This document shows positions 1,825 to 56,345 of a stretch of 64,000 nucleotides of DNA, piece by piece (position 1 is the stretch's first letter; each line of letters starts with the position of its first letter). The notes under the pieces are model-generated. The model searched no databases, was not told the origin of the DNA, and saw only the letters and a list, made by a program, of their open reading frames with translations. A program made the translations under genes and the position numbers. This DNA is from Epiperipatus broadwayi (taxonomy: Eukaryota; Animalia; Onychophora): positions 13,020,001-13,084,000 of the forward strand of contig JAQFVV010000005.1 of the NCBI GenBank assembly GCA_028023455.1, in the 5' to 3' direction.

Positions 1825-4800
1825 TGTAGTGTTTTGTAAAAATGGCAGACATGTTTTTGCACTCCAGAAAAACTAGAATTTATTCGAGAGGTTGTTTTAG
1901 ATCGTGCTGATAACTATGGAATTTAATTAAGGCATTGATGTAATGACGATCAACAATTCCAAGAAATATTTGCTGATTGCAAGTATTTCTAGATAAGAGA
2001 CCGTACCTTATTGGACAATGTAATTGATTGTTGCAGTTGTTAAAAAGTGATAAGAAGACTGGGTAACAACTACACCACCAGTAGAGAGCAGTATTTGAGT
2101 AAGCAGTGATTAGAGGACAACTCCAGTAGAGAGTAGTATTTGAGTGGGCAGTATTTAGGGTACAACGCCAGTAGACGTCTGTTCAATTCTAGTAGAGATA
2201 TCTCGTGTCAGTGCTTGTGGTAAATGACCAGTGCCCAGTGGAAATGTAGTCCATGGGTGTAGCTGAAAGAGTCCACAGAGATGGGGAGACCGCAGCGGAG
2301 ATATTGAGGGCATTTGTTGCCAGAGAATACAGAGTATATTCAGAGCATTCATTGCAGGGCATTTGTTGCCAGAGAATACAGAGTGTATTCAGAACATTCG
2401 TTGCAGGGCATTTGTTGCCAGAGAATACAGAGTGTATTCAGAGCATTCATTGCAGGGCATTTGTTGCCAGAGAATACAGAGGGTATTCAGAGCATTCATT
2501 GCAGGCAATTTGTTGCCAGAGAACCCAGAGTGTATTCAGAACATTCATTGCAGAGCATTCGTTGCAGACCATTCGTTGCAGAGCATCCATTGTAGAGCAT
2601 TCGTTGCAGGGCATTTGTTGCCAGAGAATACAGAGTGTATTCAGAGCATTAATTGCAGAGCATCCATTGCAAGAGAACAGCGTGGGAATTGAACAATAGC
2701 GAACTGTAGAGATAAAGTCTTATTGTGTATATTTATTTTATGATCACACAGACATTCTTGCGGATATAACACATATTCCCATGAGAACTTACCTGATTTT
2801 GTTTAATTTAAAACCTCTTTGCATTAAATAATATTTTCAGAAATAAATAATTTTATTTAGATTTCAAAAAATTAAATATTTTTATTAGTTTTATGATATA
2901 AATATTACTGTTTATTTATTCACAATCAAACAGATACATTGAATAAATATATGTATTTTATAAACTTTATTTTAGAAATAACACCTTCAGTAATTTATTG
3001 TATTTGAGATATATAATGAATTTATATTCCGTTTTTCTAGAAAACACATAACGGTTTTACAATTGAAGTTTTAAATTGAATTCCAAAATAGAAAACCTAG
3101 AAACTATATATGAGATGGATGAATTAGAATAAGACAATTTACTGGTGTAATGTGGGGAAAAGAGGCTTTGGATTACAGAAACTTAAATAAACTTGAAGTA
3201 ACTTTTATCCTTCAGTGGAATGATAATGGCTGAAAATTATGATGAAGAGAAATTTTCCAGTTATTGATATGTGACAGAACTGAATATGCTGAAAGTTTGT
3301 GAAAGATTTTGAACTTCAGAATTATACAATGAAAAAAATATATTGTTAAAGATTTCACTTGTAGAATATCATAAAGTATGATTAAACATCCACTAAAGCA
3401 ATATGAATTAAAAATGTAGGCAATCAATTCTTCAAAAATTTGAGGATTTTTATACAAAAAGTGATGAAAATAACTACTCAAGAAAGCACACAAGTAAGGT
3501 AATAAGAAAGTCAAATAATATTGCTAGAAAAAGTTAAAAAAATATTTGTTTACAAATAATTAACTGAAATATAAGAACTTTTATTTTTATTTTTTTATAT
3601 TAAATTTTGTTTGATAATTATAAAAAATATTTGTGTAATACTATGATTAAAAAACAAAATCGATGACTTTATCAATAAAAAAATTAATAGAAGAACTGTA
3701 TTGTTCTGGACATTCATAAGAAATTCAAGTGTCAAAAGTGCCAGCACTGGAATCAAGCTGAAAAACTTACAATCCAGAATCTGACATTTTTCTATTGCAC
3801 TATTCCAAACAAGACATGTTGTCGATATTATATAATATATAAGCAAGGACACCCATCTGATTGCATCGTAGCAGTATACCAACTTTTTAAGCTAATCTTG
3901 ATTGGCTGCTAGGTGAGTAAGATCGCTGTTGCAGATATTTAACAAATATTAAAAATGGATCCTCATTTTTAAAAATAAAACAAACTTGCAAAATACAAAC
4001 TTATTAAATTAGGTCATGTGACATCTGACTTGATTTTATATATATATATATATATGCTATGAAAATTATAAAGAAAGGTTTTATATATATATGCTTAAGA
4101 TTTTTATTGTATGTGATTAAGATAGTGTTCAAAAAAGAGCCATTTGAAAAAATAGTTGCTTTTTTTCAGTCTAGAATCAAACTATGCAAACATCAATAAA
4201 ATAAGTTAGTAGTAAACAATACAAACAAATTTTAATTATTGATTTTACTATATTTTGTGTTCTTTCATTATTTAATACTCATCAATTAATTTTAGAATGA
4301 TGACTTGATGATATTTAAATGAGGTATTTTTATGCTTATTATTATAATATCTTTGTGCTAATTTAGACTGTTGTGACAAAAATGCGAATAACTAATTTGT
4401 GGTGACACAAATATTGTTTATAGACTAAAAATGTAATTCTCATTTCTCTCAAAAATTTTAAAAAAGATATCATGTCTATAAGTATAAAGACAAAGTTAAG
4501 TTCATAATATAAATCAATAAATCTTGATTATTAATTGAGATTTAAATATTGAGTGACCTAAGGCAAAAGCCATTAAATCAAGATGCAATTGTGGATAAAT
4601 ATACTTGGAAGCCATATGCCAGTATTCACCATGGCAAGACTGTACAGTAAAAAGTAAATCACATCATAAAAGTAGATGTAATCATTGAAAAATAATGATA
4701 CAGATAATAGATGAGGCAGAAGATCAATCAACATAGAACACAGATTCTTTCTCACTACACAGCAACTTCTAATGATCACAAACTATGGATAAGCATGGAA

Positions 4801-5926: not shown

Positions 5927-6948
5927 CTTTGAAAATATGAAAAATAAAAAATATTTTATACTTAAACTAGATATTGTTTTATAAAAAATGATAAAAAGTA
6001 ATACCAATAAAATAATTAAGTAGTAAAAGATTTTTGGTAGATTTTAAAAATTATTTGCAAAAACATAAACAATAATATATAAAAAAAGGTTTGTATATAG
6101 TTATTTTTTCAGAAGAATTTTTTTCAATAATATTATTATATTTAATTTAATAAACTCTTATGGATGCAGATTCTTCTAAACAATATTCAATTTCACATCT
6201 GCTAAGTATTAAATAAATTTTCAAGAGAAATATATAAAACTTCTTGGTATTAAGTATTTATACAAATAAAAACTTTTTATTTAAATAAATTCTTATTTAA
6301 ATAAAGTTATACACACAGACAGATAAATATTCATAAATGTGTAAAGGAGATTAACTGTACTTAAACTTTAACCCACAGATATAGTTTATTTAATTCATTT
6401 TAGGCATGATATAGTTTACCTGAGATATAATGAATTAATTAAGTTCAATGTTAAAATAAATAGAAGTTTTTTTTTATCTACTCTTCTGTTATTGCAAAAT
6501 GATAGAACTGACAGTGCTGAAATGAATGAAAGGTTTTGGTACCAAAAGAGTTGGTTGTTTATAAATTTAGTTAATATTCGATTTTCTTTATTACTTTATT
6601 TCTTTTTAATATTATTTTTTATCTCTTCACATAATTTTAATATACATACATTTCATAGATAATCAATTCTTTAAGCATCTGAAATCTTTATATAAGAAAA
6701 TTATAAAGACAAGATGGACTAATAAATCTTTAAAAACATCTTAAGTATACTTTTTACATTAATTTTTATTTTTAAATTATAAATATATATTGGTAAACAC
6801 TATGGCTTAGAAAGAAAGTCAGTGACTTTACTGATAAAATGGGCAAAACTCTCTCCATACAGTAGTGCCACTCAAAGCAAGACAGAGTAATCAATGAATG
6901 CCAGAAGGCTTGTGCCAAAATCCCTATCTAGTGCCTACTCATCCAATA

Positions 6949-6990
6949 TCCCCAAACTAGTTTCTGACTTATGGCCTTTGTCAGTGAGGA
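6949..6990 (-). ncRNA. Decayed type I hammerhead ribozyme (family B)
   Basis: Reverse complement reads tcctca CTGACAA aggc cataa gtca GAAA CTAG TT tgggga. The core has CUGACGA changed to CUGACAA. Confidence 0.55.
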
Positions 6991-7307
6991 GCTTTGGATC
7001 TGAGAGCACTGCACCTAGATCTTGGGATCTAATACAACCCTCCAGCAGCCACCTTTTATCTCTACATAACTACAAAACCATGAGAATAAAATTGAAAACA
7101 CACAAATATATTCAGACACAAAAAGGTATGGGTGCTGAACTGAGGTCAGACCCATATGACTATATAAGCTACTGAGCTTAGATTGGAGATATTTGTGTGT
7201 TTTCAATTTTATTCTCATGGTTTTGTAGTTATGTAGAGATAAAAGGTGACTTCTGGAGGGTTGTATTACATCCTAAGATCTAGGTGCAGTGTTCTCAGAT
7301 CCAAAGC

Positions 7308-7349
7308 TCCTCACTGACGAAGACTATAAGCCAGAAACTAGTTTGAGGA
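7308..7349 (+). ncRNA. Decayed type I hammerhead ribozyme (family B)
   Basis: tcctca CTGACGA agac tataa gcca GAAA CTAG TT tgagga. The core and stem I are intact; stem II is mismatched. Confidence 0.6.
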
Positions 7350-10300
7350 TATTGGATGCATAGGCACTAGATAGGGATTTTATGCATCCATTGATTGTCT
7401 TGCTTTGAGTGGTGCTACTATATAGAGAGTTTTGCCTATTTTAATAACAGTTATGAGCAAGCATGGGAAATAGTGATCACGTGACTTTACTGATACCATA
7501 TGAGCACATATACAACTATAGCTGATCACAATATTAATTTTGTAAGAGGATGTAATTGGTAAAAAGCAAAGTTCTATTGAAAATTTTAGATAGATATTTC
7601 ACACTTTTAAATAGAAAAAAACACTAAAGTGTATTTTGTTGTATTTCATCAAAGATAAAAATGATATGAGTTAGAATAATGCTATCATGAATATCAAGAG
7701 ATTTTCATTATTTATTAAATCATATTTCATTATAATGGTGAAGAATCAAAAAATAAAAATGTTGAGACAACTGAAACAATTTATTCTTTTGAATAAAATG
7801 GAAGGCATTCTTTTTTGTTTAATTTAAGTCTTGGCACTAGGAATACTCTGCTGATATGAAATTGTGTACAATGTATTGATAAACTTACGGGTTAGAAATA
7901 TATATTTTGTAAAATACCAAACAAAGTATGACATTTCATAAAACTAATTGAGGATATATACATATATATTAATAAAAGAAAAACACACAATTTACTTCTC
8001 TATAAAGCTGCTTTAATATTTCAACCAGAAGTTTGGTTTTCATCAGAAAGCATAGCAAAATGGCTACTTCCAGAATTTAAACATTAAATATATATATATA
8101 TATTGTAATCTTATACTTAGCCTATAAAGGGTTAAATATAATAATAGTAGTTATTTTATTTTTTACTGAAATAAATATAACCCTTTAATAAATAAACTTT
8201 ACTCTTTCTAAGCTATGTAAAATCATAACAATACATTCTAAAGTATTAATAAAATGTCTTTGTTAAATATATTTGAATCACAATTACTAAAGAATATCAA
8301 TTAATTGATTTGATAGTTGTTAGTCAGAATTTGATAAGTTAAATGTAGATAAGTTAGTTTAAAATGTGCTGTTTGAGCTAATTGTAGTGGATAAAGTTTT
8401 GGTTTTGCTATCTGTCAAGATATTATTTATTAATCTGTGTTAAAATGCATCAGTTAATTCATGTAATAATTATTTGAAATTAAAGCTTAGGTAAAACTAG
8501 TTTGAAATAGGTTTTATTTTAAATGAATTTCAGCAAGTAAATTTAGTTTTGCTGTCTTTTAAAATATTATTTTTTAACTTGCAGTAAATGCCATAGTTCC
8601 TTTAATCATTTTCTAGTATACATATATGAATGTCTCTGCATGTATGCTAAAAGAGAGAAGTTTAAAATGAGTTATTTAAAAGGGTTAATAATCTTAAAAA
8701 ATAGTATAGTTTATAAATGGTATTTTAATATTAAATGATATAACTAGAATCTCTTAAGAACTTTTAAATAGGTAAAAAGTATTTGTTTTAAATACAAGAT
8801 ATTTGATTTAAATTAAGTAGATAATTTTAATTGAATAATTAAGATAAAGTTAATTATTTTAGTTACCGTCTAAAGGTCATGAGTTTAAATCTATTCTTAG
8901 ACATTTTAATTAATAAAAGATCATAGTCAAATTTATTTTATATAACTGATTTAAAAAAAGTTAAAATTGTTAATCAATTTTAAAAACTCCAGCTCAGTAT
9001 TCACCCTTGATTGCTTTAATAATACCATATGACAAACTACAGTTTTCCTGGTAAGCCATACACATTTTAAAAGAAAAAAACGGGAAAAATCAAATTACTT
9101 TTTAATTAATTATTCTTTTTTTCTGTTCAACTTACTGAATTATTTTTCAGTTATTTGTTCAGGTTATTTTAACTACTTATTATTTTATCAGTGAAATAAT
9201 GTTAGACTAGAAACCTCCAAAGTCATTTAGACAAGTCTACATTGGCCTGTACATGTTCCCTTACCTGTAAATGATATCTCATTGGAGAATATAAAAAACT
9301 GTATTGTTATAAAATTAGTGTTATAAATATGAAAATCTACTGGAAATTGCTAAGCTGGAAAGTTATAGTTATGTTTAATTTACCATATCTATAGACTTTC
9401 AGCTAATTCTGAACTTTTATTATAAAACCATTTTATTACCCACTTTATTATTTAAAGCTTTAATTAGTTGTATAAGCTAATTACAAATAGTAATGGTATT
9501 ATCTTTTATATGCTATTAAATGCTTTATTTTAGAAGAAAAGTAATTTATATGTGTACAATTTAATAACTAAAATACAGTTATCATTATATCAAGAACTAT
9601 TTTGAAAATTATTATAACTTTAATTAACAAAATAGATACAATAATGAGTCATTTTAAAACTATTGCAAATTTAAAGGATAAAATAAAATGCAGACACTTT
9701 AAATTTCTTTATCTAATTATGATTTATCTAAATTGATTTTCTTAGTATTTTGGAAAAGACATTATATATCTGTATTACCTCCAATACAAATAAGATATCT
9801 CAGCATTATAATAATTTATTTATTCATAATTTATTTATTGAAAGTATATTTTATTGTTCTGCAAAAAGAAATAATTTGAATTTGCTTTGTGGCTTAATAA
9901 TATTGCCAAATAATGTCTCAACTTTTATTATCAAACTGTTTGTTACCTGTTTATTCTTAATTTTCTCTCTACTTAAAAATTTAAATTACAGACCACATTT
10001 TTCAAGAAATTGTTAATTCCTTTCTTTTATACATAATAAAAGAAAAACTGTGCTCTATTTTGTTATATGGAACAACAGGACTCATAAGTTAAGAGGGTTA
10101 TTTTCATTTTAAATAATGAAAGAACTTTCAATCCTCAAACTTATTTAATATGGGTAAAACAAATGAAATGTATTTTATGGTTTTCTGAAATTGATATATG
10201 TTTATTATTATTGAATTATCATAGTTATATTATTTATGCATTTCTAATTATTATAAACAGTGTAAGGTATATTTATAACAATATCTATGTTATTATGGGC

Positions 10301-18728: not shown

Positions 18729-21700
18729 TTACCCATAATCTGCTCTATCCCATTTCCACAACATAATTTTTGTCAACTCTATAACCTTTATATCTAAATC
18801 CCCCTTATCTTTTCCCAAACCCAGCATAAAAACCAATAATTCACTTTCTGTATAATCACTCTTTTCATATTTATTTTTCCACAACTTCATTATATGTACC
18901 CTTTCTGTTTTCAAACATTTACATTCAATTAACAAATGCCTAATATTTTCAATTCCTTCCTTACATAATTTACAAAATAAATCACCCATATTTTTCCATT
19001 TACATGTATATTCTTTTGTAGCTAAAGATCCCGTTCGAGCCTTAAACAATAAACTACTTTCCTTACTATTATCATATATTAACTCACACCTAATATTCTG
19101 TTTATTTCTATATATATTTAAACTCTTTTTACTCTCCATACTATTTCTCCATCTCTCTAATTCCCTAGTCTTTATTAATAAATTTATTCTTTTATCCCAT
19201 TCCTTACTACTATAACACTCAATAATCCTCTTAACACAATCATCCCATCTTTTGTACAAATATACTGATATAAATTCTTTATCCAAATCTTTTGCATAGC
19301 GCATTACCTTTCTCACCCATCTTGTTACCTGCCCTTTACTCATAACCCAATTAAATACTATTTTAGCTATTCTTTTATTATCCATAAACTGCAATCTACC
19401 AAACATTTTCATTTTACTTTTTGCATCTCTCATATGAAAACTTGACCATCCCATTTCTCCTTGAATTGCCTCCCTTGCTGTCCATACTTCTGCATCCAAT
19501 GCATGTCTTCCTACTTCCCTTTGAGCTTTTTCTAAATAATCTAATATCTTTTTACTAACATATAATGCATCATTACCATATGTTAACCCTGCTACTGCAA
19601 CTCCTTTCCATATAATTCTAGCTACATCATATTTATTATATGAAAATACTGTTAATTTCTTTATCAATCCCTTTCTTTTCTTTGCTTCATTTATCAATTT
19701 TTTCTCCCATTCATCCAAATAATTTTTCTGATTACTTAAAATAATTCCCAAATAACTATATCTATTCACCACACTTAACTTAATATCTCCCAATAAAAAT
19801 TCTACATCTTCTCTTTCCTCAGTATTAACCATCATTATATTTGATTTTTCTTCACTAAATTTAATCCCCATCTCTTTACCCACCCTTGCACATGTCCTCA
19901 ACATAACTTCCATATCTTCTCTTTTTTCTGCACACAAAAATATATCATCTGCAAAAAAAAAGACCTGACAAAATATATACTCCCTTACTACCTATTAACG
20001 GTATCTCTATCCCTCTTCCTAATCTTTCTATTGCTCTTTCCATTTCACTCAAATACAACACAAACAAAATAGGTGACATAGGGCATCCTTGCCTTAGTCC
20101 CACACCATTTTTAACTTTAATTGATTCTATATTCTCTAATTGATATATATAATAATTATTTTCATATAATTTCTTAATAATATCTATTAAAGCTTCATCC
20201 ATTCCCAAATTTGCTAAACTTATCCATAATCTATTTCTATTTACTCTATCATATGCCTTCTCTATATCTATAAAACTCATATATAACTGTTTATCTGCAT
20301 TCCTACTCATATCCATAAGTTGTGTAACTACAAATAAACTATCTCCTATACGCCTATCTAATCTAAAACCTCCTTGCATTTCACCCACTACATTATTCCT
20401 TTCCATCCATTTTACAACTTTACTAGCCACCATATACAAGAAAACTTTATATAAAACTGATGTTACCGCTATCGGTCTATAATTATTCAACTTTCTATGA
20501 TTCTTACCCTTTCCTTTAAATAATAACCTTATTCTTGTATTACTCCAACTACTTGGGAAAACTCTATTCTGTGCCATTTTATTAAAACAGGATAATAACT
20601 TTACTTTTGCCTTATATCCTAAATTCATTACCATCTCTGCTGCCCATCCATCTAAACCTCTTGCCTTCCCACTTTTCAATTTCTTCTCTACCTCATTTAG
20701 TTCATTTTCTGAAAAACTAATATTCCCATTACTATATTCTTTCATATTTTCTAATATTCTATCATTCACATCTAACATCTTTTCTATATTCATTACATAA
20801 CTATTTAAGATTCTCTCTAAATCTTCTCTAGAACTACACTCAGTTCCCTCATCATCTAGTAATACTAACTCTCTCTCCCCTACATTTCTCCTTTTAATAT
20901 AATTCCAAAATTTTTTACTTCCATCTCTTCCACTTTTATTAATATCCTCCAACAATTTCCTATTCAATTTCATTCTCTCTCTATAAATATCTATTTTAGC
21001 CAACTTCTTCTTTTCTAAGTACTTTTCCCATTTAGCATTAATATCTTTTTCACTTTCCTTATTCTTAATAGCACACTTGTATTCTCTACATGCTTCTTTC
21101 CTTTCTTTTACACTTTTACTAATTTTAATTTTTTTATTACTTTTATTCTTTTCAATATTCTCACCTAAAACCCTATTTGCAACTTTTTCTACTTCCTTAC
21201 ACCAATCCTTATACTCATCCCCAACCCACTCTTCCATTATTTCTTCAACTTGTATTTTATACTCTTCCAACTTATTCTTATCATTTACTCTCCATCCACA
21301 TCTTTCACTATTATTTCTACTTTTATTTCTATTCTCCATCACATTACTAACCATTTCAATTACAATGAAATTATGATCACTAGTGCATACTTTTTCTTCA
21401 TTATCAAATAACTTAATTTTCCGTATTTTATTTATTCCCTCTTTCTCTACCAATACATAATCTATTGTGTGAAATATATTATTTCTGGACCATGTGTATT
21501 GTCCCTCATAAATATTTAATAAATTTCCAATACTCAAATTCACTTTCTGACAAAAATTCTTCAAAAGCTGTCCATTTTTATTATCTACATCATCAATTTC
21601 TTCAATATGTCCATTCATATCCCCTATAACCATTATTCTCTTCCCCCTTTCTTTAAAACTTTGTATATCCTTAACTAAACATTCATATATATTACTATTC

Positions 21701-22148
21701 CACTCCAATATAATTTGACTATCTCCAGTAGCTATATAAAGTATAGCCACCATCCATTCTTGTCTGCCCAACCTTATTTCAAACCACAAGTGTTCTTGAC
21801 ATTTAACAATATTTAAATATTTTTTGATATAACACCTATACCACCACCCCTTTTTTCTTTTTCTTTTCTATTTATACCCTGCCATACCGACTGTTCCAAA
21901 ATAGGTTCTTCTTCTTCTCTTAAATGTGTTTCCACTACTGCTAATACCTCAAGCTCTTCATTTTCAATTGTTTTATTTAATTCCATCCACTTTTCTGGTT
22001 TCCTACCACCTTGCATATTCAAAAACCCAATTTTAACAATTTCTTCTTTCCTAACTACTCTTTTATAAATTCTTTTAATTCTTTCTTCTCCATTACATTT
22101 ATAAATTACTTTCTTACCATTAATTTTACAAACCCATTCCTTCTCCAT
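18729..22148 (-). pseudogene. LINE ORF2: APE endonuclease, reverse transcriptase and C-terminal CCHC zinc finger, with two frameshifts
   Basis: Motifs GFLNMQG, ETH, GGGIG, IGDMNGH, DYVL, SDH, YRPIAV, QGGFR, FIDIEKAYD, GLRQGCPMSP, FADD (restored by removing one base from the A9 run at 19953-19961), YLGI and CKLC..H..C. The other frameshift is at ~21820-21830. Confidence 0.92.
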
Positions 22149-22243
22149 ATCTATATTTATATCAAAATCAAATTCCTTTTGCTTACTTCTTATATTGCAT
22201 CCATTCTTTTTAATAATATTACAATTTAAAAACCCACCCCCCT

Positions 22244-23173
22244 TTATAAGTTTCCGGAAAAAAATTCTTTATAAATCAAACTCCCTAAAACTTCACTTCC
22301 TTGTTTTCCTAAATGCAACCCATCTTTACTATATAACTCTCTCTTTCCAATAAAACAATCCCACACATCCACAAACATAACATTATTTCTCTCACACAAT
22401 TTTTTCAATCTCTCATTTATAGAACATGCCCTATCTAACAAATAACCCTTGTCAAATCTTGGTAATAATCCAACTATTCCTACTCTTCCTTTAATCATAA
22501 TCAAATTCCTAATCAAATCTACATACTCATCCATTATTCTCTCTGATGATTCTAATAAATTATTAGTCCCCACCATAATATATACATCTCTACTACCTTG
22601 TTTTTTAACTTTATCTGCTACATCCCTAATTCTAGCTCCAGGCAAACATACTCTTACATACCTACTTCTATTTTCCCGTGCAATTATATCCCCACATTCT
22701 CTAATTAGTGAATCTCCTATCAATACTGTTTCATAATCTACTTTTTCTGCTCTATCCATAACATTTTCTAATACCTTCTGGTCCTCCTTATCTATTTCTT
22801 CCTTATCATTCCTACTCAATAATTCCTTTATCTCCTCACATTTTATCTCTAATGATTTTAATTTTACTTCTACATACTTCAATTCTTCCTCTATCTTATT
22901 TATTCTTTGACTAATCATCTCCATTACACTATTACTTTCTCCATCCACTATTCTTCGACTATCTACACTTTGAAAACACTTTCTCACCTCTTTTATCATA
23001 TTAATACACTGACTGCATAACCATAAACCTTTTACATCCTTCCTAGTCTTATTTAAACATTTCAAGTGATATACCCCATCACATATAGTACATTCTACAA
23101 CAGCACGCTTAATTTCCTTTTCCCGATTATATAAACATTTTATATAATATAACTTAAAATATGACTAGCTCAT
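22244..23173 (-). pseudogene. LINE ORF1: PHD finger, coiled coil and SGNH/GDSL esterase
   Basis: (Y)IKC...CTICDGVYHLKC...WLCSQC, followed by LIGDS, PGAR, VGTNN and DGLHL. ATG at 23173 has an in-frame TAG at codon 3. Confidence 0.85.
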
Positions 23174-27747: not shown

Positions 27748-27997
27748 GGAGGGTTGCATTAGATCCTAAGATCTAGGTGCAGTGCTCTCAGATCCAAAGC
27801 TCCTCACTGACGATGGCCACAAGCCAGAAACTAGTCTGGGGATATTGGATGAGTAGGCATTAGATAGGGATTTTATGCATAAGCCTTCTGGCATTCATTG
27901 ATTACTCTGGTTGGCACAGGGTGGCAATACTGTATGGAGAGTTTTGCTTTGTTTATAAACAAATTTGTGCTAATATTAAGAGATAGTGATCATGTGA
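27748..27997 (+). mobile_element. Single-arm copy of the family-B hammerhead element
   Basis: Colinear with 7255-7490. Confidence 0.85.
27801..27842 (+). ncRNA. Minimal type I hammerhead ribozyme (family B, best preserved)
   Basis: tcctca CTGACGA TGGC cacaa GCCA GAAA CTAG TC tgggga. It has a full core, 6-bp stem I, 4-bp stem II, palindromic ACUAGU stem III and a GUC site after 27836. Confidence 0.85.
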
Positions 27998-45000: not shown

Positions 45001-45189
45001 TTAATTAAATAGTTATAAATAGATAACTCCATCCATTAAATATTTCCTTATATATTTATTATATTTATTTTATCCAATTTTACATATATATATGTCCACA
45101 GATGGCGTTCTACCAAAAACACCGATCAAGCGTATGTTTTGTTTACATAAACGTCAGAGTAGCATTCACTATCTCTAACTATAATTCCA

Positions 45190-45233
45190 CTTTCAGATCA
45201 TGATTTCAAGCTATTTGCTATCATCAGTGAAAG
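45190..45233 (-). ncRNA. Type I hammerhead ribozyme (family C, L1)
   Basis: Reverse complement reads ctttca CTGATGA TAGC aaata GCTT GAAA TCATGA TC tgaaag. Confidence 0.8.
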
Positions 45234-45594
45234 ACAGGAATAAAGAAACTAGATCTAAATACAAACTCTGAGCGTTTATGAAACAATTTCTATTCAGCTT
45301 GCAAGGTGAATTTTTTAGACACGTAATGTCTTCAAACTCAGCATAGCAAACCAGATAGCTATATGGGTCTGATCTCAGTTCAGCATCACTACATAGTAGA
45401 AGCCTCTGCAATCTATATCATTGCAAGAAAGACCTCAAAGGTACATTTATGATAAACAAAAATGCAAGTTAAAAAAACTTGCTAATGCTTGTATTTATGT
45501 CCACAGATGGCGTTCTACCAAAAACACTGATCAAGCATATGTTTTGTTTACATAAACGTCAGAGTAGCATTCACTATCTCTAACTATAATTCCA

Positions 45595-45638
45595 CTTTCA
45601 GATCATGATTTCAAGCTATTTGCTATCATCAGTGAAAG
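45595..45638 (-). ncRNA. Type I hammerhead ribozyme (family C, L2)
   Basis: Identical to L1. Confidence 0.8.
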
Positions 45639-46000
45639 ACAGGAATAAAGAAACTAGATCTAAATACAAACTCTGAGCGTTTATGAAACAATTTCTATTC
45701 AGCTTGCAAGGTGAATTTTTTAGACACGTAATGTCTTCAAACTCAGCATAGCAAACCAGATAGCTATATGGGTCTGATCTCAGTTCAGCATCACCACATA
45801 GTAGAAGCCTCTGCAATCTATATCATTGCAAGAAAGACCTCAAAGGTACATTTATGATAAACAAAAATGCAAGTTAAAAAAAACTTGCTAACGCTTGTAT
45901 TTATGTCCACAGATGGCGTTCTACCAAAAACACCGATCAAGCGTATGTTTTGTTTACATAAACGTCAGAGTAGCATTCACTATCTCTAACTATAATTCCA

Positions 46001-46044
46001 CTTTCAGATCATGATTTCAAGCTATTTGCTATCATCAGTGAAAG
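46001..46044 (-). ncRNA. Type I hammerhead ribozyme (family C, L3)
   Basis: Identical to L1. Confidence 0.8.
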
Positions 46045-46727
46045 ACAGGAATAAAGAAACTAGATCTAAATACAAACTCTGAGCGTTTATGAAACAATTT
46101 CTATTCAGCTTGCAAGGTGAATTTTTTAGACACGTAATGTCTTCAAACTCAGCATAGCAAACCAGATAGCTATATGGGTCTGATCTCAGTTCAGCATCAC
46201 CACATAGTAGAAGCCTCTGCAATCTATATCATTGCAAGAAAGACCTCAAAGGTACATTTATGATAAACAAAAATGCAAGTTAAAAAACTTGCTAACGCTT
46301 GTATTTATGTCCACAGATGGTGTTCTACCAAAAACACCGATCAAGCGTATGTTTTGGAATTAGGTTTTGGAATTATAGTTAGAGATAGTGAATGCTACTC
46401 TGACGTTTATGTAAACAAAACATACGCTTGATCGGTGTTTTTGGTAGAATGCCATCTGTAGACATAAATACAAGCGTTAGCAAGTTTTTTAACTTGCATT
46501 TTTGTTTATCATAAATGTACCTTTGAGGTCTTTCTTGCAATGATATAGATTGCAGAGGCTTCTACTATGTAGTGATGCTGAACTGAGATCAGACCCATAT
46601 AGCTATCTGGTTTGCTATGCTGAGTTTGAAGACATTACGTGTCTAAAAAATTCACCTTGAAAGCTGAATAGAAATTGTTTCATAAACGCTCAGAGTTTGT
46701 ATTTAGATCTAGTTTCTTTATTCCTGT

Positions 46728-46771
46728 CTTTCACTGATGATAGCAAATAGCTTGAAATCATGATCTGAAAG
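46728..46771 (+). ncRNA. Type I hammerhead ribozyme (family C, R1)
   Basis: Stem I CTTTCA/TGAAAG; core CTGATGA 46734-46740; GAAA 46754-46757; palindromic ATCATGAT stem III; predicted AUC cleavage after 46765. Confidence 0.8.
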
Positions 46772-47131
46772 TGGAATTATAGTTAGAGATAGTGAATGCT
46801 ACTCTGACGTTTATGTAAACAAAACATACGCTTGATCGGTGTTTTTGGTAGAACGCCATCTGTGGACATAAATACAAGCGTTAGCAAGTTTTTTAACTTG
46901 CATTTTTGTTTATCATAAATGTACCTTTGAGGTCTTTCTTGCAATGATATAGATTGCAGAGGCTTCTACTATGTGGTGATGCTGAACTGAGATCAGACCC
47001 ATATAGCTATCTGGTTTGCTATGCTGAGTTTGAAGACATTACGTGTCTAAAAAATTCACCTTGCAAGCTGAATAGAAATTGTTTCATAAACGCTCAGAGT
47101 TTGTATTTAGATCTAGTTTCTTTATTCCTGT

Positions 47132-47175
47132 CTTTCACTGATGATAGCAAATAGCTTGAAATCATGATCTGAAAG
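47132..47175 (+). ncRNA. Type I hammerhead ribozyme (family C, R2)
   Basis: Identical to R1; predicted cleavage after 47169. Confidence 0.8.
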
Positions 47176-47535
47176 TGGAATTATAGTTAGAGATAGTGAA
47201 TGCTACTCTGATGTTTATGTAAACAAAACATACGCTTGATCGGTGTTTTTGGTAGAACGCCATCTGTGGACATAAATACAAGCGTTAGCAAGTTTTTTAA
47301 CTTGCATTTTTGTTTATCATAAATGTACCTTTGAGGTCTTTCTTGCAATGATATAGATTGCAGAGGCTTCTACTATGTGGTGATGCTGAACTGAGATCAG
47401 ACCCATATAGCTATCTGGTTTGCTATGCTGAGTTTGAAGACATTACGTGTCTAAAAAATTCACCTTGCAAGCTGAATAGAAATTGTTTCATAAACGCTCA
47501 GAGTTTGTATTTAGATCTAGTTTCTTTATTCCTGT

Positions 47536-47579
47536 CTTTCACTGATGATAGCAAATAGCTTGAAATCATGATCTGAAAG
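47536..47579 (+). ncRNA. Type I hammerhead ribozyme (family C, R3)
   Basis: Identical to R1; predicted cleavage after 47573. Confidence 0.8.
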
Positions 47580-48625
47580 TGGAATTATAGTTAGAGATAG
47601 TGAATGCTACTCTGACGTTTATGTAAACAAAACATACGCTTGATCGGTGTTTTTGGTAGAACGCCATCTGTGGACATAAATACAAGCGTTAGCAAGTTTT
47701 TTAACTTGCATTTTTGTTTATATATATATATATCATTTTAAGGTTTGCTATTATTGAGATATAGATCTTTAAACAAAGGGCATTACTGGATATTTGTAAT
47801 TGTATGATGGTTTGTATATATATATTGTGTTTAATATAAATATAATTCTTGTGATTAAAACTGATGCAACTGATATAATGAAAATTAAATATTTTCTAGC
47901 CTCAGCATAAGACAATAATTTTTATGAAAGCTGTCCTAAAACAAAGTAGTCCTTTTTCTCTCAATGTTTCATTTATTTATATAGAGGATTGTCTGAAATA
48001 CTTAGATCAGAAATGATGAATATTTTAAAATTGATTGATACCACTAGTTGATATGTCTGAGATTTTTCACCAGTTCAAATGAATGAAAATATATAATATA
48101 AAAAAATTCCAGTACTAAATATATACAATATACTACAAGATTAAAACTAATGAAGTTGTTACAATAGATAATTGAAATATTGTCTAGCCACAGCATAAGA
48201 AAATATTTTTAATGAGAAAAGAGCTTTTGTTAAATGTCTGAAATCCGGGTGCGGCCGCTTGATCGCGTTGTTTCTGTACAAAAATAATGAAATGTAACGT
48301 TACCAGGACGATATTTTTTTTATTGAAAAATTTACGAAACAAAATTAATTTTTATTAAAATAATATTTTAAAAGAAGATCTTTTGAGTTGTTGGGCTTCC
48401 TCTAGTAGTAAGCACATTTCTATTCATTGTTTGATCACAGTATCCTAGCAAGAATATCTTTGGATTTAAAAATTAACATAAAAATATTATTTTGTAAATT
48501 TTAAAAGCAAATATCTATTTTTCATTTTCTTTTTTTTTTCTAATATGATCACTGACTAATTTTTATATTTGTATTATTCTATTTTTTTTTTATATTTTTG
48601 ATGGAAACATCTTTAAATATTATAC

Positions 48626-55925: not shown

Positions 55926-56345
55926 TACATGAGGGGTCAGATTGACTTAAGGTCAACATGAGTGTGACAAGAATCTCAGCCTCAGGATGGCCTTTGAGCG
56001 TTCCATCATCAGATTTTTAATTGGATGGACAATTGAAGAGTTGGAGTGGAGTGAAGCCTGTCCATTAAAGTATGAAAATTGGCTATCTTAATGTATATAT
56101 ATCTGAGCACTTATTGCATTTATATGTAGAGATGATAATCTGAACCAACTGATGATTGCTGGTTTAGCATGAAATACATATATTGGTGATTATTTATCTT
56201 TTTGATATATATGTGTCCAAGTGTATCAGTGTTATGAGATAGAGTGGAGAGTGGTGGGTCATGTGAAAGTCTGTGTTCATATACCCTATATATTAATACA
56301 GGTATATAATAAGCCTGTATTTCAGTTATTACAAAAGTTTCTGAC
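55926..56345 (+). mobile_element. Family-E hammerhead element (~420 bp)
   Basis: Homologous to 62868-63350 and, inverted, to ~62670-62845. Confidence 0.8.
56144..56187 (+). ncRNA. Type I hammerhead ribozyme (family E)
   Basis: accaa CTGATGA T TGCTGG t TTAGCA T GAAA TACATA TA ttggt. Confidence 0.7.

Follow-up and report, generated by a model that had tools for sequence, protein, structure and literature searches.

The repeats newt satellite 2, Schistosoma Sm-alpha and cave-cricket pDo500 are tandem arrays with units of a few hundred bp that carry dimer-acting type I hammerhead ribozymes, and are transcribed and self-processed. They occur in other hosts and have different sequences from the onychophoran element described here, and the likeness is drawn from general descriptions, among them the summaries in PMC7229834. 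To our knowledge, the classical descriptions of these three repeats omit insertion anatomy.

In axolotl, Cervera and de la Pena (2020, PMC7229834) described the retrozyme Rtz_353, whose hammerhead HHR_Amex2 has a 2-bp helix III with a tetraloop and a helix II with U.U at its base. HHR_Amex2 cleaves in vitro, poorly when alone and best as a dimer (PMC7229834). The present element has the same helix III and the same U.U. Its head-to-head arms, fixed 3' termini and (TA)n targets have no mention in the published description of Rtz_353. Each of the two elements is a tandem array of non-coding repeats a few hundred bp long, every repeat with a type I hammerhead, and each has reached tens of thousands of copies in a genome that also holds Penelope-like elements (PLEs). 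They differ in unit length (~350 bp in axolotl, 404 bp here), in that circles have been shown in axolotl and are predicted here, and in the host genome, which is here 5.6 Gb and AT-rich. We know of no sequence relation between the two.

According to Craig et al. 2021 (PMC8557442), PLE insertions show partial tandem copies, an inverted copy truncated at its 5' end and a tail at one of the two ends, and some clades target (TA)n. For the anole Poseidon PAc protein, both DNA strands are cut and extended with a preference for AT-rich targets, and two internal start sites bound the 'tail' (Frangieh et al. 2024, PMC11167929). The element shares with these systems a hammerhead followed some 90–150 nt on by two reverse transcription start sites, a tail at one end only, the use of both DNA strands, an AT-rich or (TA)n target, 5' truncation, partial tandems and an inverted upstream copy. 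The tail is 30–40 bp in PLEs and 47 nt in the element, which unlike PLEs has no ORF, measures 404 nt per unit in all and carries a full type I hammerhead with a helix III rather than the minimal PLE form. In 25 of 26 two-ended insertions, each arm uses a different one of the two start sites, a coordination unreported in vitro.

Typical animal non-LTR retrozymes have units of about 150–1000 bp, repeated in tandem without coding capacity and each with a type I hammerhead; they are scattered in many copies and expressed as linear and circular monomeric RNA. Animal retrozymes are related to PLE pLTRs (10.64898/2026.07.22.740005). The non-autonomous LTR retrozymes of plants are likewise bounded by hammerheads and form circular RNA (PMC4918200, PMC7761336); these have type III hammerheads in LTRs, a primer binding site, a polypurine tract, 4-bp target duplications and mobilization by Gypsy machinery, none of which is found in the element. 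Non-LTR retrozymes and their link to PLEs have already been described, which makes the existence of the family unsurprising. With an anatomy that matches insertion by PLE machinery, the element plainly belongs to a kind already known.

Architecture of the locus

The window analysed is a 64,000-nt stretch of the Epiperipatus broadwayi genome (assembly GCA_028023455.1, contig JAQFVV010000005.1, positions 13,020,001 to 13,084,000), and all coordinates refer to it. The locus is a head-to-head pair of inverted arms, ~2.6 kb in length, built of 404-bp non-coding repeats and consisting of the following parts:

45083–45093, no strand: left flanking (TA)n, target microsatellite, merging with the AUA of start site A
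45087–46356, minus strand: left arm, 3.1 tandem units of 405–406 bp (Tandem Repeats Finder period 406, 98% matches)
46357–46367, no strand: inner head-to-head junction, 11-nt filler
46368–47721, plus strand: right arm, 3.4 tandem units of 404 bp (Tandem Repeats Finder period 404, 99% matches)
47679–47721, plus strand: tail, unit positions 106–148, at the right outer end only
47720–47733, no strand: right flanking (TA)n, target microsatellite

The outer (3') end of the left arm lies at ~45091, corresponding to start site A (...CUGUGGACAUA), and its inner end is 5'-truncated at unit position 55. The right arm begins at unit position 7 and its outer (3') end, 47721, is unit position 148, at start site B. 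Between the two CAUAAAU start-site motifs, the tail carries the hairpin GCAAGUU-UUUU-AACUUGC (47692–47709). The arms are of unequal length, are mutually complementary at 99–100% across stretches of 390–479 nt, and are bordered by two distinct unique sequences. The junction filler together with its flanks forms a 13-nt tandem duplication (GTTTTGGAATTAG x 1.9). A match to the Rfam family mir-2831 at this junction was rejected, being sub-threshold and caused by the palindrome alone.

An earlier note, made from these letters alone, had described near-identical, CpG-retaining units of ~405 bp in inverted arms and no credible ORF. The repeat periods of 406 and 404 agree with this, as do the observed/expected CpG ratio (0.55 in the element against 0.24 in the window) and the longest ORF, of 66 aa with a TTG start. 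The differences among the units at the locus are singletons only, most of them at CpG.

Logan contigs from sequencing runs, of uncertain run type, were compared across 46330–46800, and the inner junction at 46330–46361 had zero depth in any run. Such contigs show neither RNA ends nor circles; the joint expected of a circle is also present in any tandem array. The family was observed in DNA contigs and in contigs labelled as two other organisms.

The hammerhead motif and its predicted fold

Six copies of a 44-nt hammerhead motif are present at the locus, three in each arm:

45190–45233, minus strand: hammerhead, left-arm copy 1, predicted cut 45196/45195
45595–45638, minus strand: hammerhead, left-arm copy 2, predicted cut 45601/45600
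46001–46044, minus strand: hammerhead, left-arm copy 3, predicted cut 46007/46006
46728–46771, plus strand: hammerhead, right-arm copy 1, predicted cut after 46765
47132–47175, plus strand: hammerhead, right-arm copy 2, predicted cut after 47169
47536–47579, plus strand: hammerhead, right-arm copy 3, predicted cut after 47573

All six are free of mismatches, and no copy would be expected in shuffled sequence; the stems and the three plus-strand cuts had been given in the earlier note and are the same here. A hammerhead core consists of C3 U4 G5 A6 N7 G8 A9, G12 A13 A14, an A15.1-U16.1 pair and H17, which is not G. The core CUGAUGA ... GAAA-U...A-U-C was read in 6/6 motifs and agrees with type I, with C17 at the cut site. 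Helix I is open, while helices II and III are closed by loops. Helix I consists of 6 bp (CUUUCA/UGAAAG) and a 5-bp extension, AUUCC-UGU-CUUUCA / UGAAAG-U-GGAAU. Helix II, U-AGC-AAAUA-GCU-U, has an AGC/GCU stem, an AAAUA loop and a U.U at its base in place of the G10.1-C11.1 pair, which is usual at this position but not invariant. Helix III, AUCAUGAU, has only the 2 bp of AU/AU closed by a CAUG loop, and between two copies it extends to 8 bp (-7.2 kcal/mol).

By nearest-neighbour energies, the active fold of the monomer lies at +0.8 kcal/mol against -9.2 kcal/mol for a competitor that pairs GAUGAU with AUCAUG, which suggests that the hammerhead would act as a dimer or with help. The whole unit RNA folds with z = -6.0, and changes falling within predicted pairs kept the pair in 100 cells against 27 otherwise.

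The Rfam hammerhead models gave no match to the whole window at the gathering score, nor, at E <= 10, to stretches of 2.8 kb or 91 nt. As a control, the window's other hammerhead-like motif (27801–27842) was blank as well, and the blank for the element therefore says little; the models appear insensitive to forms with a short helix III. Apart from mir-2831, these searches gave only chance C/D-box snoRNA scores.

Family size, array homogeneity and selection on the ribozyme

A search for the 32-nt hammerhead core with up to 2 mismatches returned 33,973 copies in the 5.6-Gb genome and 0 for the reversed control. The copies are dispersed across the genome at 89–100% identity. At the DNA level, the earlier proposal of a young element of the non-LTR retrozyme type holds. 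Identity between the two arms of one locus (0.975) was close to that inside single arms (0.969), and both exceeded the 0.943 between loci. The arrays are star-like, with 414 singleton columns against 61 shared, and most genomic arrays show 2–8% divergence among their own units. As judged from the identities and the star-like form, each locus is one insertion event and the arrays were born homogeneous, which fits repeated copying of one monomer and, with it, the rolling-circle reverse transcription that had been suggested for the arms. At one locus, L025, the units alternate in an ABAB pattern at 24 sites. Its origin from a dimeric circle was rejected because of dead cores in both unit types, and DNA-level duplication fits better.

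Exact 44-mers were counted genome-wide as 13,854 with C7G8, 6,381 with U7G8 and 510 with C7A8. Neutral decay of the C7G8 CpG would give equal numbers of U7 and A8, so the 12.5:1 excess of U7 shows selection. N7 (C or U) is also the only common variant of the core genome-wide, and among the 64 sites at which array consensuses differ, the single one within the 44-nt motif is again N7 (p = 0.007). A pair in helix I covaries, being U-A in 13,854 copies and C-G in 838, with the mismatched C.A and U.G in 45 and 42. These genomic counts show the hammerhead to have been under purifying selection in the propagating lineages, and the retention of G8 and the covariation in helix I fit a ribozyme that would have to work.

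Among the first 100 places, dead A8 cores were found in both arms in 7 loci and in neighbouring units in 6 loci. This distribution implies that cleavage-dead templates are inserted now and then, in agreement with the in vitro insertion by hammerhead mutants (PMC11167929).

Insertion ends and target

In the fetched loci, nearly every insertion has its minus arm first and its plus arm second; the inner ends vary and the outer ends are fixed. The head-to-head form is thus the rule across the family, which contradicts the earlier view of the inversion as special to this locus or a possible artefact. The outer ends of the family read ...GTGGACATA(TA)n or ...GTTTATCATA(TA)n, at 4,103 and 16,258 places genome-wide, respectively, and (TA)n is present at both outer ends in nearly all complete insertions. 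The fixed 3' termini lie at unit positions ~105 (A) and ~152 (B), each within an invariant CAUAAAU. Measured from the cut site, these start sites lie ~100 and ~150 nt downstream, and the interval between them is the 47-nt tail found at one end only.

One A end was paired with one B end in 25 of 26 two-ended insertions (7 from fetched loci and 18 by pairing of listed end-pattern places); the remaining insertion was B/B and none was A/A. In raw counts, B ends are about fourfold commoner than A ends, and many insertions are therefore not simple A/B pairs.

The inner ends across the family fall anywhere in the unit and show no clustering at the cut site. After correction for arms continuing into the previous unit, 5/34 lay within 14 nt of the cut against ~2.4 expected, and the candidate explanation of inner ends as the 5' ends of hammerhead-cleaved RNA was rejected. 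At the present locus, the right arm had been noted to start 6 nt past a predicted cut. Its start at unit position 7 is correct, whereas the significance attached to it does not stand given the unclustered inner ends of the family, and the proximity is most likely a coincidence.

The insertions are truncated at the 5' end and partly tandem, and next to that end stands an inverted copy that is itself 5'-truncated; all of these are traits of the PLE type. The insertion anatomy points to Penelope-like machinery.

Penelope-like elements in the genome

A first look with a GIY-YIG profile search returned 10,239 candidates, and all 150 that were scored exceed the Pfam cut-off. These candidates have open frames of up to 901 aa, including a translated frame with YVDD and GIY...YIG. 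By these profile matches, PLEs and the hammerhead element coexist in the same genome. Pfam hmmscan on three long PLE frames returned no family, probably due to their extreme K/N/I-rich composition. One sampled PLE family ends 97 nt past a hammerhead-like motif of its own. Comparison of the unit by blastn with 18 sampled PLE loci, from >10,000 candidates, gave no similarity and no autonomous partner, and a search of the same 18 loci for CATA(TA)n ends gave no clear partner.

Proposed model of integration and alternative explanations

The locus is likely to result from one fairly recent insertion, and the inserted element to be non-autonomous, non-coding and of the non-LTR retrozyme type, in essence a PLE reduced to its hammerhead-bearing terminal region and moved by Penelope-like machinery. 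A PLE reverse transcriptase/GIY-YIG endonuclease would cut both strands of a (TA)n target, and the resulting 3' ends would serve as primers at internal positions of the RNA, with reverse transcription starting at site A from one end and at site B from its partner. Each cDNA would then circle a monomer-sized template several times. The simplest such template would be a circular RNA, formed from a multimeric transcript by hammerhead cleavage and subsequent ligation. Joining of the two same-sense cDNAs head to head, via microhomology or filler, would yield two inverted arms of more than 3 units with the 47-nt tail at one end.

A possible, still tentative account of the A/B rule is a dimeric PLE particle on a single, probably circular, RNA, in which two reverse transcriptases start simultaneously from two registers 47 nt apart, each primed by one cut (TA)n strand. 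If this holds, the thousands of insertions would document, in nature, a coordinated integration on two strands that has been seen only in part in vitro and, with the 12.5:1 retention of G8, hammerhead catalysis would matter for propagation in vivo though it is dispensable for insertion in vitro.

The template need not be circular, and the same non-autonomous PLE-type element could have been copied from an unprocessed linear multimeric transcript, with the hammerhead kept for protein binding, for example, or for another processing step. Insertion by PLE machinery proceeds in vitro without hammerhead catalysis and with unprocessed RNA as the main substrate (PMC11167929), the arms cross the cut site several times with inner ends that do not cluster there, and both arms carry dead A8 cores at some loci. 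Against this, the arrays were born homogeneous although most genomic arrays, the possible sources, differ by 2–8% among their units, G8 has been kept 12.5:1 over the mirror CpG change together with the covarying helix I pair, and retrozyme circles are documented in other animals (PMC7229834). On balance, a linear template seems rather unlikely.

Ordinary satellite DNA, amplified by unequal exchange or slippage with the hammerhead as a relic and the inversion as a local rearrangement, would accord with the DNA-level duplication seen in the ABAB array of L025. It is very improbable given that thousands of dispersed short arrays have the two exact ends in common, together with (TA)n flanks, truncated 5' ends and arms set head to head, that identity between inverted arms equals that within an arm, and that the hammerhead is selected. 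The inversion could also be a fold-back artefact of long-read sequencing or assembly, as 46330–46361 is covered by no contig of any run, tandem and inverted insertions of the PLE type trouble assemblies (PMC8557442) and the related locus L008 contains adapter-like letters. However, the outer flanks are unique and differ from one another, the unequal arms end at the differing unit positions A and B, and dozens of independent loci show the head-to-head form, each with its own junction, which makes an artefact very unlikely.

Under the preferred reading of a retrozyme-type insertion, this very large and young family records its own integration, with both strands primed, two fixed starts of which each arm uses one, and a (TA)n target, and would tie animal retrozymes to PLE machinery by mechanism, beyond co-occurrence or related sequences. 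In vivo evidence that the ribozyme is needed for long-term propagation, read from genomic copies, comes from the CpG mirror test and from the compensated pair in helix I; the published in vitro work could not show this need. Repeat annotators tend to label such arrays as satellite DNA or fold-back artefacts, and neither label applies here.

A block common to a second hammerhead family

Each unit also contains one copy of a 24-nt block:

46981–47004, plus strand: 24-nt block GCTGAACTGAGATCAGACCCATAT, one per unit
46577 and 47385, plus strand: further copies of GCTGAACTGAGATCAGACCCATAT
45361, 45766 and 46172, minus strand: further copies of GCTGAACTGAGATCAGACCCATAT

The same block is common to the element and another hammerhead family, located at position 7134 of the window.

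Organization of the palindromic locus

The locus consists of two tandem arrays in opposite orientation, with 99-100% complementarity between the arms, flanked on both sides by (TA)n; G+C content of the window is 27.9%. Six mismatch-free copies of a 44-nt motif are present, three in each arm, where none is expected by chance, and the palindrome of tandem units with six identical hammerhead motifs described in the earlier note was thereby borne out. The arrays and the elements of the motif are listed below.

Features of the locus, with the motif read against the hammerhead consensus
45087-46356, left tandem array, opposite in orientation to the right, period 406, 3.1 copies
46368-47721, right tandem array, opposite in orientation to the left, period 404, 3.4 copies
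Helix I, CUUUCA/UGAAAG
Core at this locus, CUGAUGA
Helix II, AGC/GCU with U.U at its base
GAAA and C17 elements, both present
Helix III, A-U and U-A closed by CAUG, within the palindrome AUCAUGAU

Cleavage on the plus strand is predicted after 46765, 47169 and 47573. The longest open reading frame is at most 66 aa, so the element is non-coding, and CpG observed/expected is 0.55 compared with 0.24 in the surroundings; both the lack of a credible ORF and the retention of CpG had been read correctly from the sequence. The outer end of the left arm lies at site A (45091) and that of the right arm at site B (47721), where it falls four bases before the position usual for B, with 11 nt of filler at the inner junction forming a 13-nt duplication. 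Sub-threshold matches to Rfam mir-2831 on both strands of 46327-46445 (36.7 and 35 bits, gathering score 90) arise from this inverted junction and were rejected as a microRNA.

Folding of the unit RNA gave -121.8 kcal/mol (z = -6.0 relative to shuffles), with helix I predicted to be extended by GGAAU/AUUCC past a small internal loop and a long helix predicted between ~20-60 and ~310-370. Among departures from the commonest pair in 22 units, a standard pair was kept in 100 cells and broken in 27, which is only suggestive of the predicted structure given that it was derived from the same, related sequences.

A dispersed family with two fixed outer ends

The genome-wide copy survey proposed in the earlier note revealed a very large dispersed family, with 33,973 occurrences of a 32-nt core at up to two mismatches in the 5.6-Gb assembly containing the window, and none of the reversed control. 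A minus arm followed by a plus arm recurs in 24 fetched loci, in which arms range from less than one unit to seven units (longer runs exist among the places listed) and inner ends occur throughout the unit. Only two kinds of outer end were found in these loci, both continuing into (TA)n.

Outer ends, in unit positions counted from the predicted hammerhead cut
Site A, ...CCATCTGTGGACATA, position ~105
Site B, ...TTTTGTTTATCATA, position ~152

Both sites lie within a heptamer, CAUAAAU, invariant in 22/22 aligned units of all subfamilies, and the two heptamers flank a hairpin, GCAAGUU-UUUU-AACUUGC. All seven complete two-armed insertions among the fetched loci carry one A and one B end. When the exact places listed for both end patterns were paired, contigs C1 to C6 added 18 A/B insertions, in both orders, together with one B/B and no A/A, such that in 25 of these 26 insertions the 47 nt between the sites are present at one end only. 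Genome-wide, the A pattern was counted 4,103 times and the B pattern 16,258 times, an excess probably due in part to lower sensitivity of the A pattern and to short single arms, and perhaps also to a B end common to other families. Inner junctions show overlaps of 0-6 nt or filler of 1-35 nt. At one locus (L008:1900-1940; G000:C12445, about 608.6 kb) the right arm stops a few bases past the hammerhead cut and is followed by Illumina-adapter-like letters, GGAATCGGAAGAGCGTCGTG, which probably entered the assembly through adapter contamination or a chimeric read.

Correspondence with Penelope-like elements

Insertions of Penelope-like elements (PLEs) are 5'-truncated partial tandems, often accompanied on their 5' side by an inverted 5'-truncated copy and bearing a tail of 30-40 bp at one end, with (TA)n preferred in some clades (Craig et al., PMC8557442). 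Purified anole PLE protein cuts and extends both DNA strands, prefers AT-rich DNA and uses two neighbouring internal start sites for reverse transcription, located ~90 nt downstream of the hammerhead cut and separated by the tail (Frangieh et al., PMC11167929). Every one of these insertion marks is also present in the 404-bp family. On this insertion anatomy, the earlier retrozyme-like reading is right in kind, the element being a retrozyme mobilised by PLE machinery, an already known kind; the RNA steps of that reading stand as a proposal only.

The genome itself is full of PLEs. A first search for GIY-YIG gave 10,239 candidates, all 150 scored exceeding the cut-off, with open frames of up to 901 aa and both YVDD and GIY...YIG in one translated frame. 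In one of the PLE families sampled, the element ends 97 nt past its own deviant hammerhead-like motif, and none of the PLEs among 18 loci sampled had sequence similarity to the unit. One locus (L041; G000:C12394:20940001-20950000) holds 3.1-kb PLEs in tandem, an inverted copy upstream of them, and 855-901-aa open frames; the frame is extremely K-, N- and I-rich and contains YVDD and GIY...YIG motifs, and Pfam hmmscan reported no family for it.

One template per insertion

Unit identity is 0.975 between the arms of a locus, 0.969 within an arm and 0.943 between loci. At the studied locus units differ by singletons only, 6-7 of about 10 at CpG, and across arrays 414 variable columns are singleton and 61 shared, 24 of the latter from one locus. 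Because identity between arms equals that within arms and variation is mostly singleton, arrays were homogeneous at birth and have since decayed independently with no detectable homogenisation, the same template sequence having been copied into both arms. This also bears on whether the inversion is a fold-back artefact of assembly. Although the inner junction had no coverage in the single available read test, the unique flanks differ on the two sides, the arms differ in length and end type, and each locus records one event with one template for both arms; an artefact is therefore ruled out for practical purposes.

Growth at the DNA level is seen in one array (L025:190-1902; G000:C52, about 909-910.6 kb), where four units alternate strictly as ABAB at 24 sites with only two singletons and the hammerhead cores of both unit types are dead (G8A plus A15.1G; G5C). 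The array represents an old dimer that was recently duplicated at the DNA level, and satellite-like growth thus also occurs in the family. Elsewhere, a helix I mismatch variant, C.A, repeats at two-unit spacing of 801-818 bp (G000:C6507:366637-375477 and G000:C12918:202407-203268), which could reflect DNA-level dimer duplication or copying from templates of dimer size whose alternate ribozymes fail.

Selection on the hammerhead

Three population-level tests point to constraint on the hammerhead. The majority core, CUGACGA, contains a CpG at C7-G8, where deamination on one strand gives U7, the only free core position, and on the other gives A8, with loss of the catalytic G8. Exact 44-mers genome-wide numbered 13,854 for C7G8, 6,381 for U7G8 and 510 for C7A8, a U7:A8 ratio of 12.5 to 1, although the two should be equally common under mutation alone. 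Most U7 copies belong to arrays composed throughout of U7 units and are found on two unrelated subfamily backgrounds; A8 copies are mostly single. Among the first 100 places listed, A8 was present in both arms at seven loci and in neighbouring units at six; insertion thus occasionally draws on dead-core templates, by a rough count ~35 times more rarely than on U7 templates. At the helix I pair of motif positions 2 and 43, U-A (13,854) is accompanied by dispersed C-G (838) and by few C.A (45) or U.G (42), C-G being one compensated change that later founded an active subfamily. Across 17 array consensuses only one of 64 differing sites lies within the motif, at N7 (0.023 differences per nt, compared with 0.175 elsewhere; Fisher p = 0.007), whereas post-insertion singletons are only mildly rarer there (0.91 and 1.46 per nt). 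DNA-run contigs are concordant, with N7, G8A and the two paired helix I positions as the common in-motif variants. The sequencing runs containing the family were examined as contigs, and two of them, labelled 'RNA?', may represent low-coverage DNA.

In a sequencing run labelled as a different organism, B (X6), contig depth at the hammerhead and the initial ~45 nt of the unit exceeded that of the remainder of 46330-46800 by a factor of 10-100, marking the ribozyme and extended helix I region as the parts conserved between species.

Rfam models did not report the hammerhead of the 404-bp unit, and also missed the window's other hammerhead-like motif used as a control, so the blank says little. 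Axolotl HHR_Amex2 shares with this hammerhead U.U at 10.1/11.1 and a 2-bp helix III; its cleavage is weak as a single motif and efficient in dimeric form (PMC7229834). The monomeric active fold is predicted at +0.8 kcal/mol and a competitor at -9.2, the latter being further stabilised in the prediction by U7, the variant present at the studied locus; this subfamily may therefore cut less efficiently than the C7 majority.

Proposed route of insertion

The anatomy of the insertions, the use of a single template in each event, array homogeneity at birth, ribozyme selection and an abundance of PLE genes are observed. By analogy with published PLE biochemistry, a PLE protein would cut both (TA)n strands and each target 3' end would prime inside the RNA at CAUAAAU, whose AUA could base-pair with the end of the TA repeat; such pairing would account for the ambiguity of the exact junction position. 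From the homogeneity and retrozyme precedent, the template would be a monomer-sized circle, produced by hammerhead cleavage and host ligation and copied round and round, and the junctions suggest that the two same-sense cDNAs would be joined by overlap or filler. The main alternative would be that a very young array supplied the template as a multimeric transcript without processing, in place of the circle; such copying is allowed by in vitro PLE data and hinted at by the occasional loci with A8 in both arms.

Other elements in the window

Further hammerheads and a LINE-type retrotransposon are present in the window.

Additional features
About 6950-6990, minus, second-family hammerhead
About 7305-7345, plus, second-family hammerhead
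27801-27842, plus, hammerhead-like motif, TCCTCA-CTGACGA-...-GAAA-CTAGT-C-TGGGGA, 1-bp helix III, palindromic loop
56144-56187, plus, hammerhead-like motif, ACCAA-CTGATGA-TTGCT...AGCAT-GAAA..., U.U at helix II base
18729-23065, minus, LINE with three consecutive ORFs: GDSL-lipase-like ORF1; AP endonuclease plus reverse transcriptase; zf-RVT

The LINE is distinct from the PLEs. A near copy of the 56144-56187 motif adjoins a GIY-YIG match at another locus of the genome (L037). The second hammerhead family, which looks unrelated, forms a small head-to-head insertion at 6900-7400. It has in common with the 404-bp unit a 24-nt block (GCTGAACTGAGATCAGACCCATAT in the unit; GCTGAACTGAGGTCAGACCCATAT at 7134) that lies about equally far upstream of the hammerhead in both, and this block may serve both families for recognition or as a promoter element.
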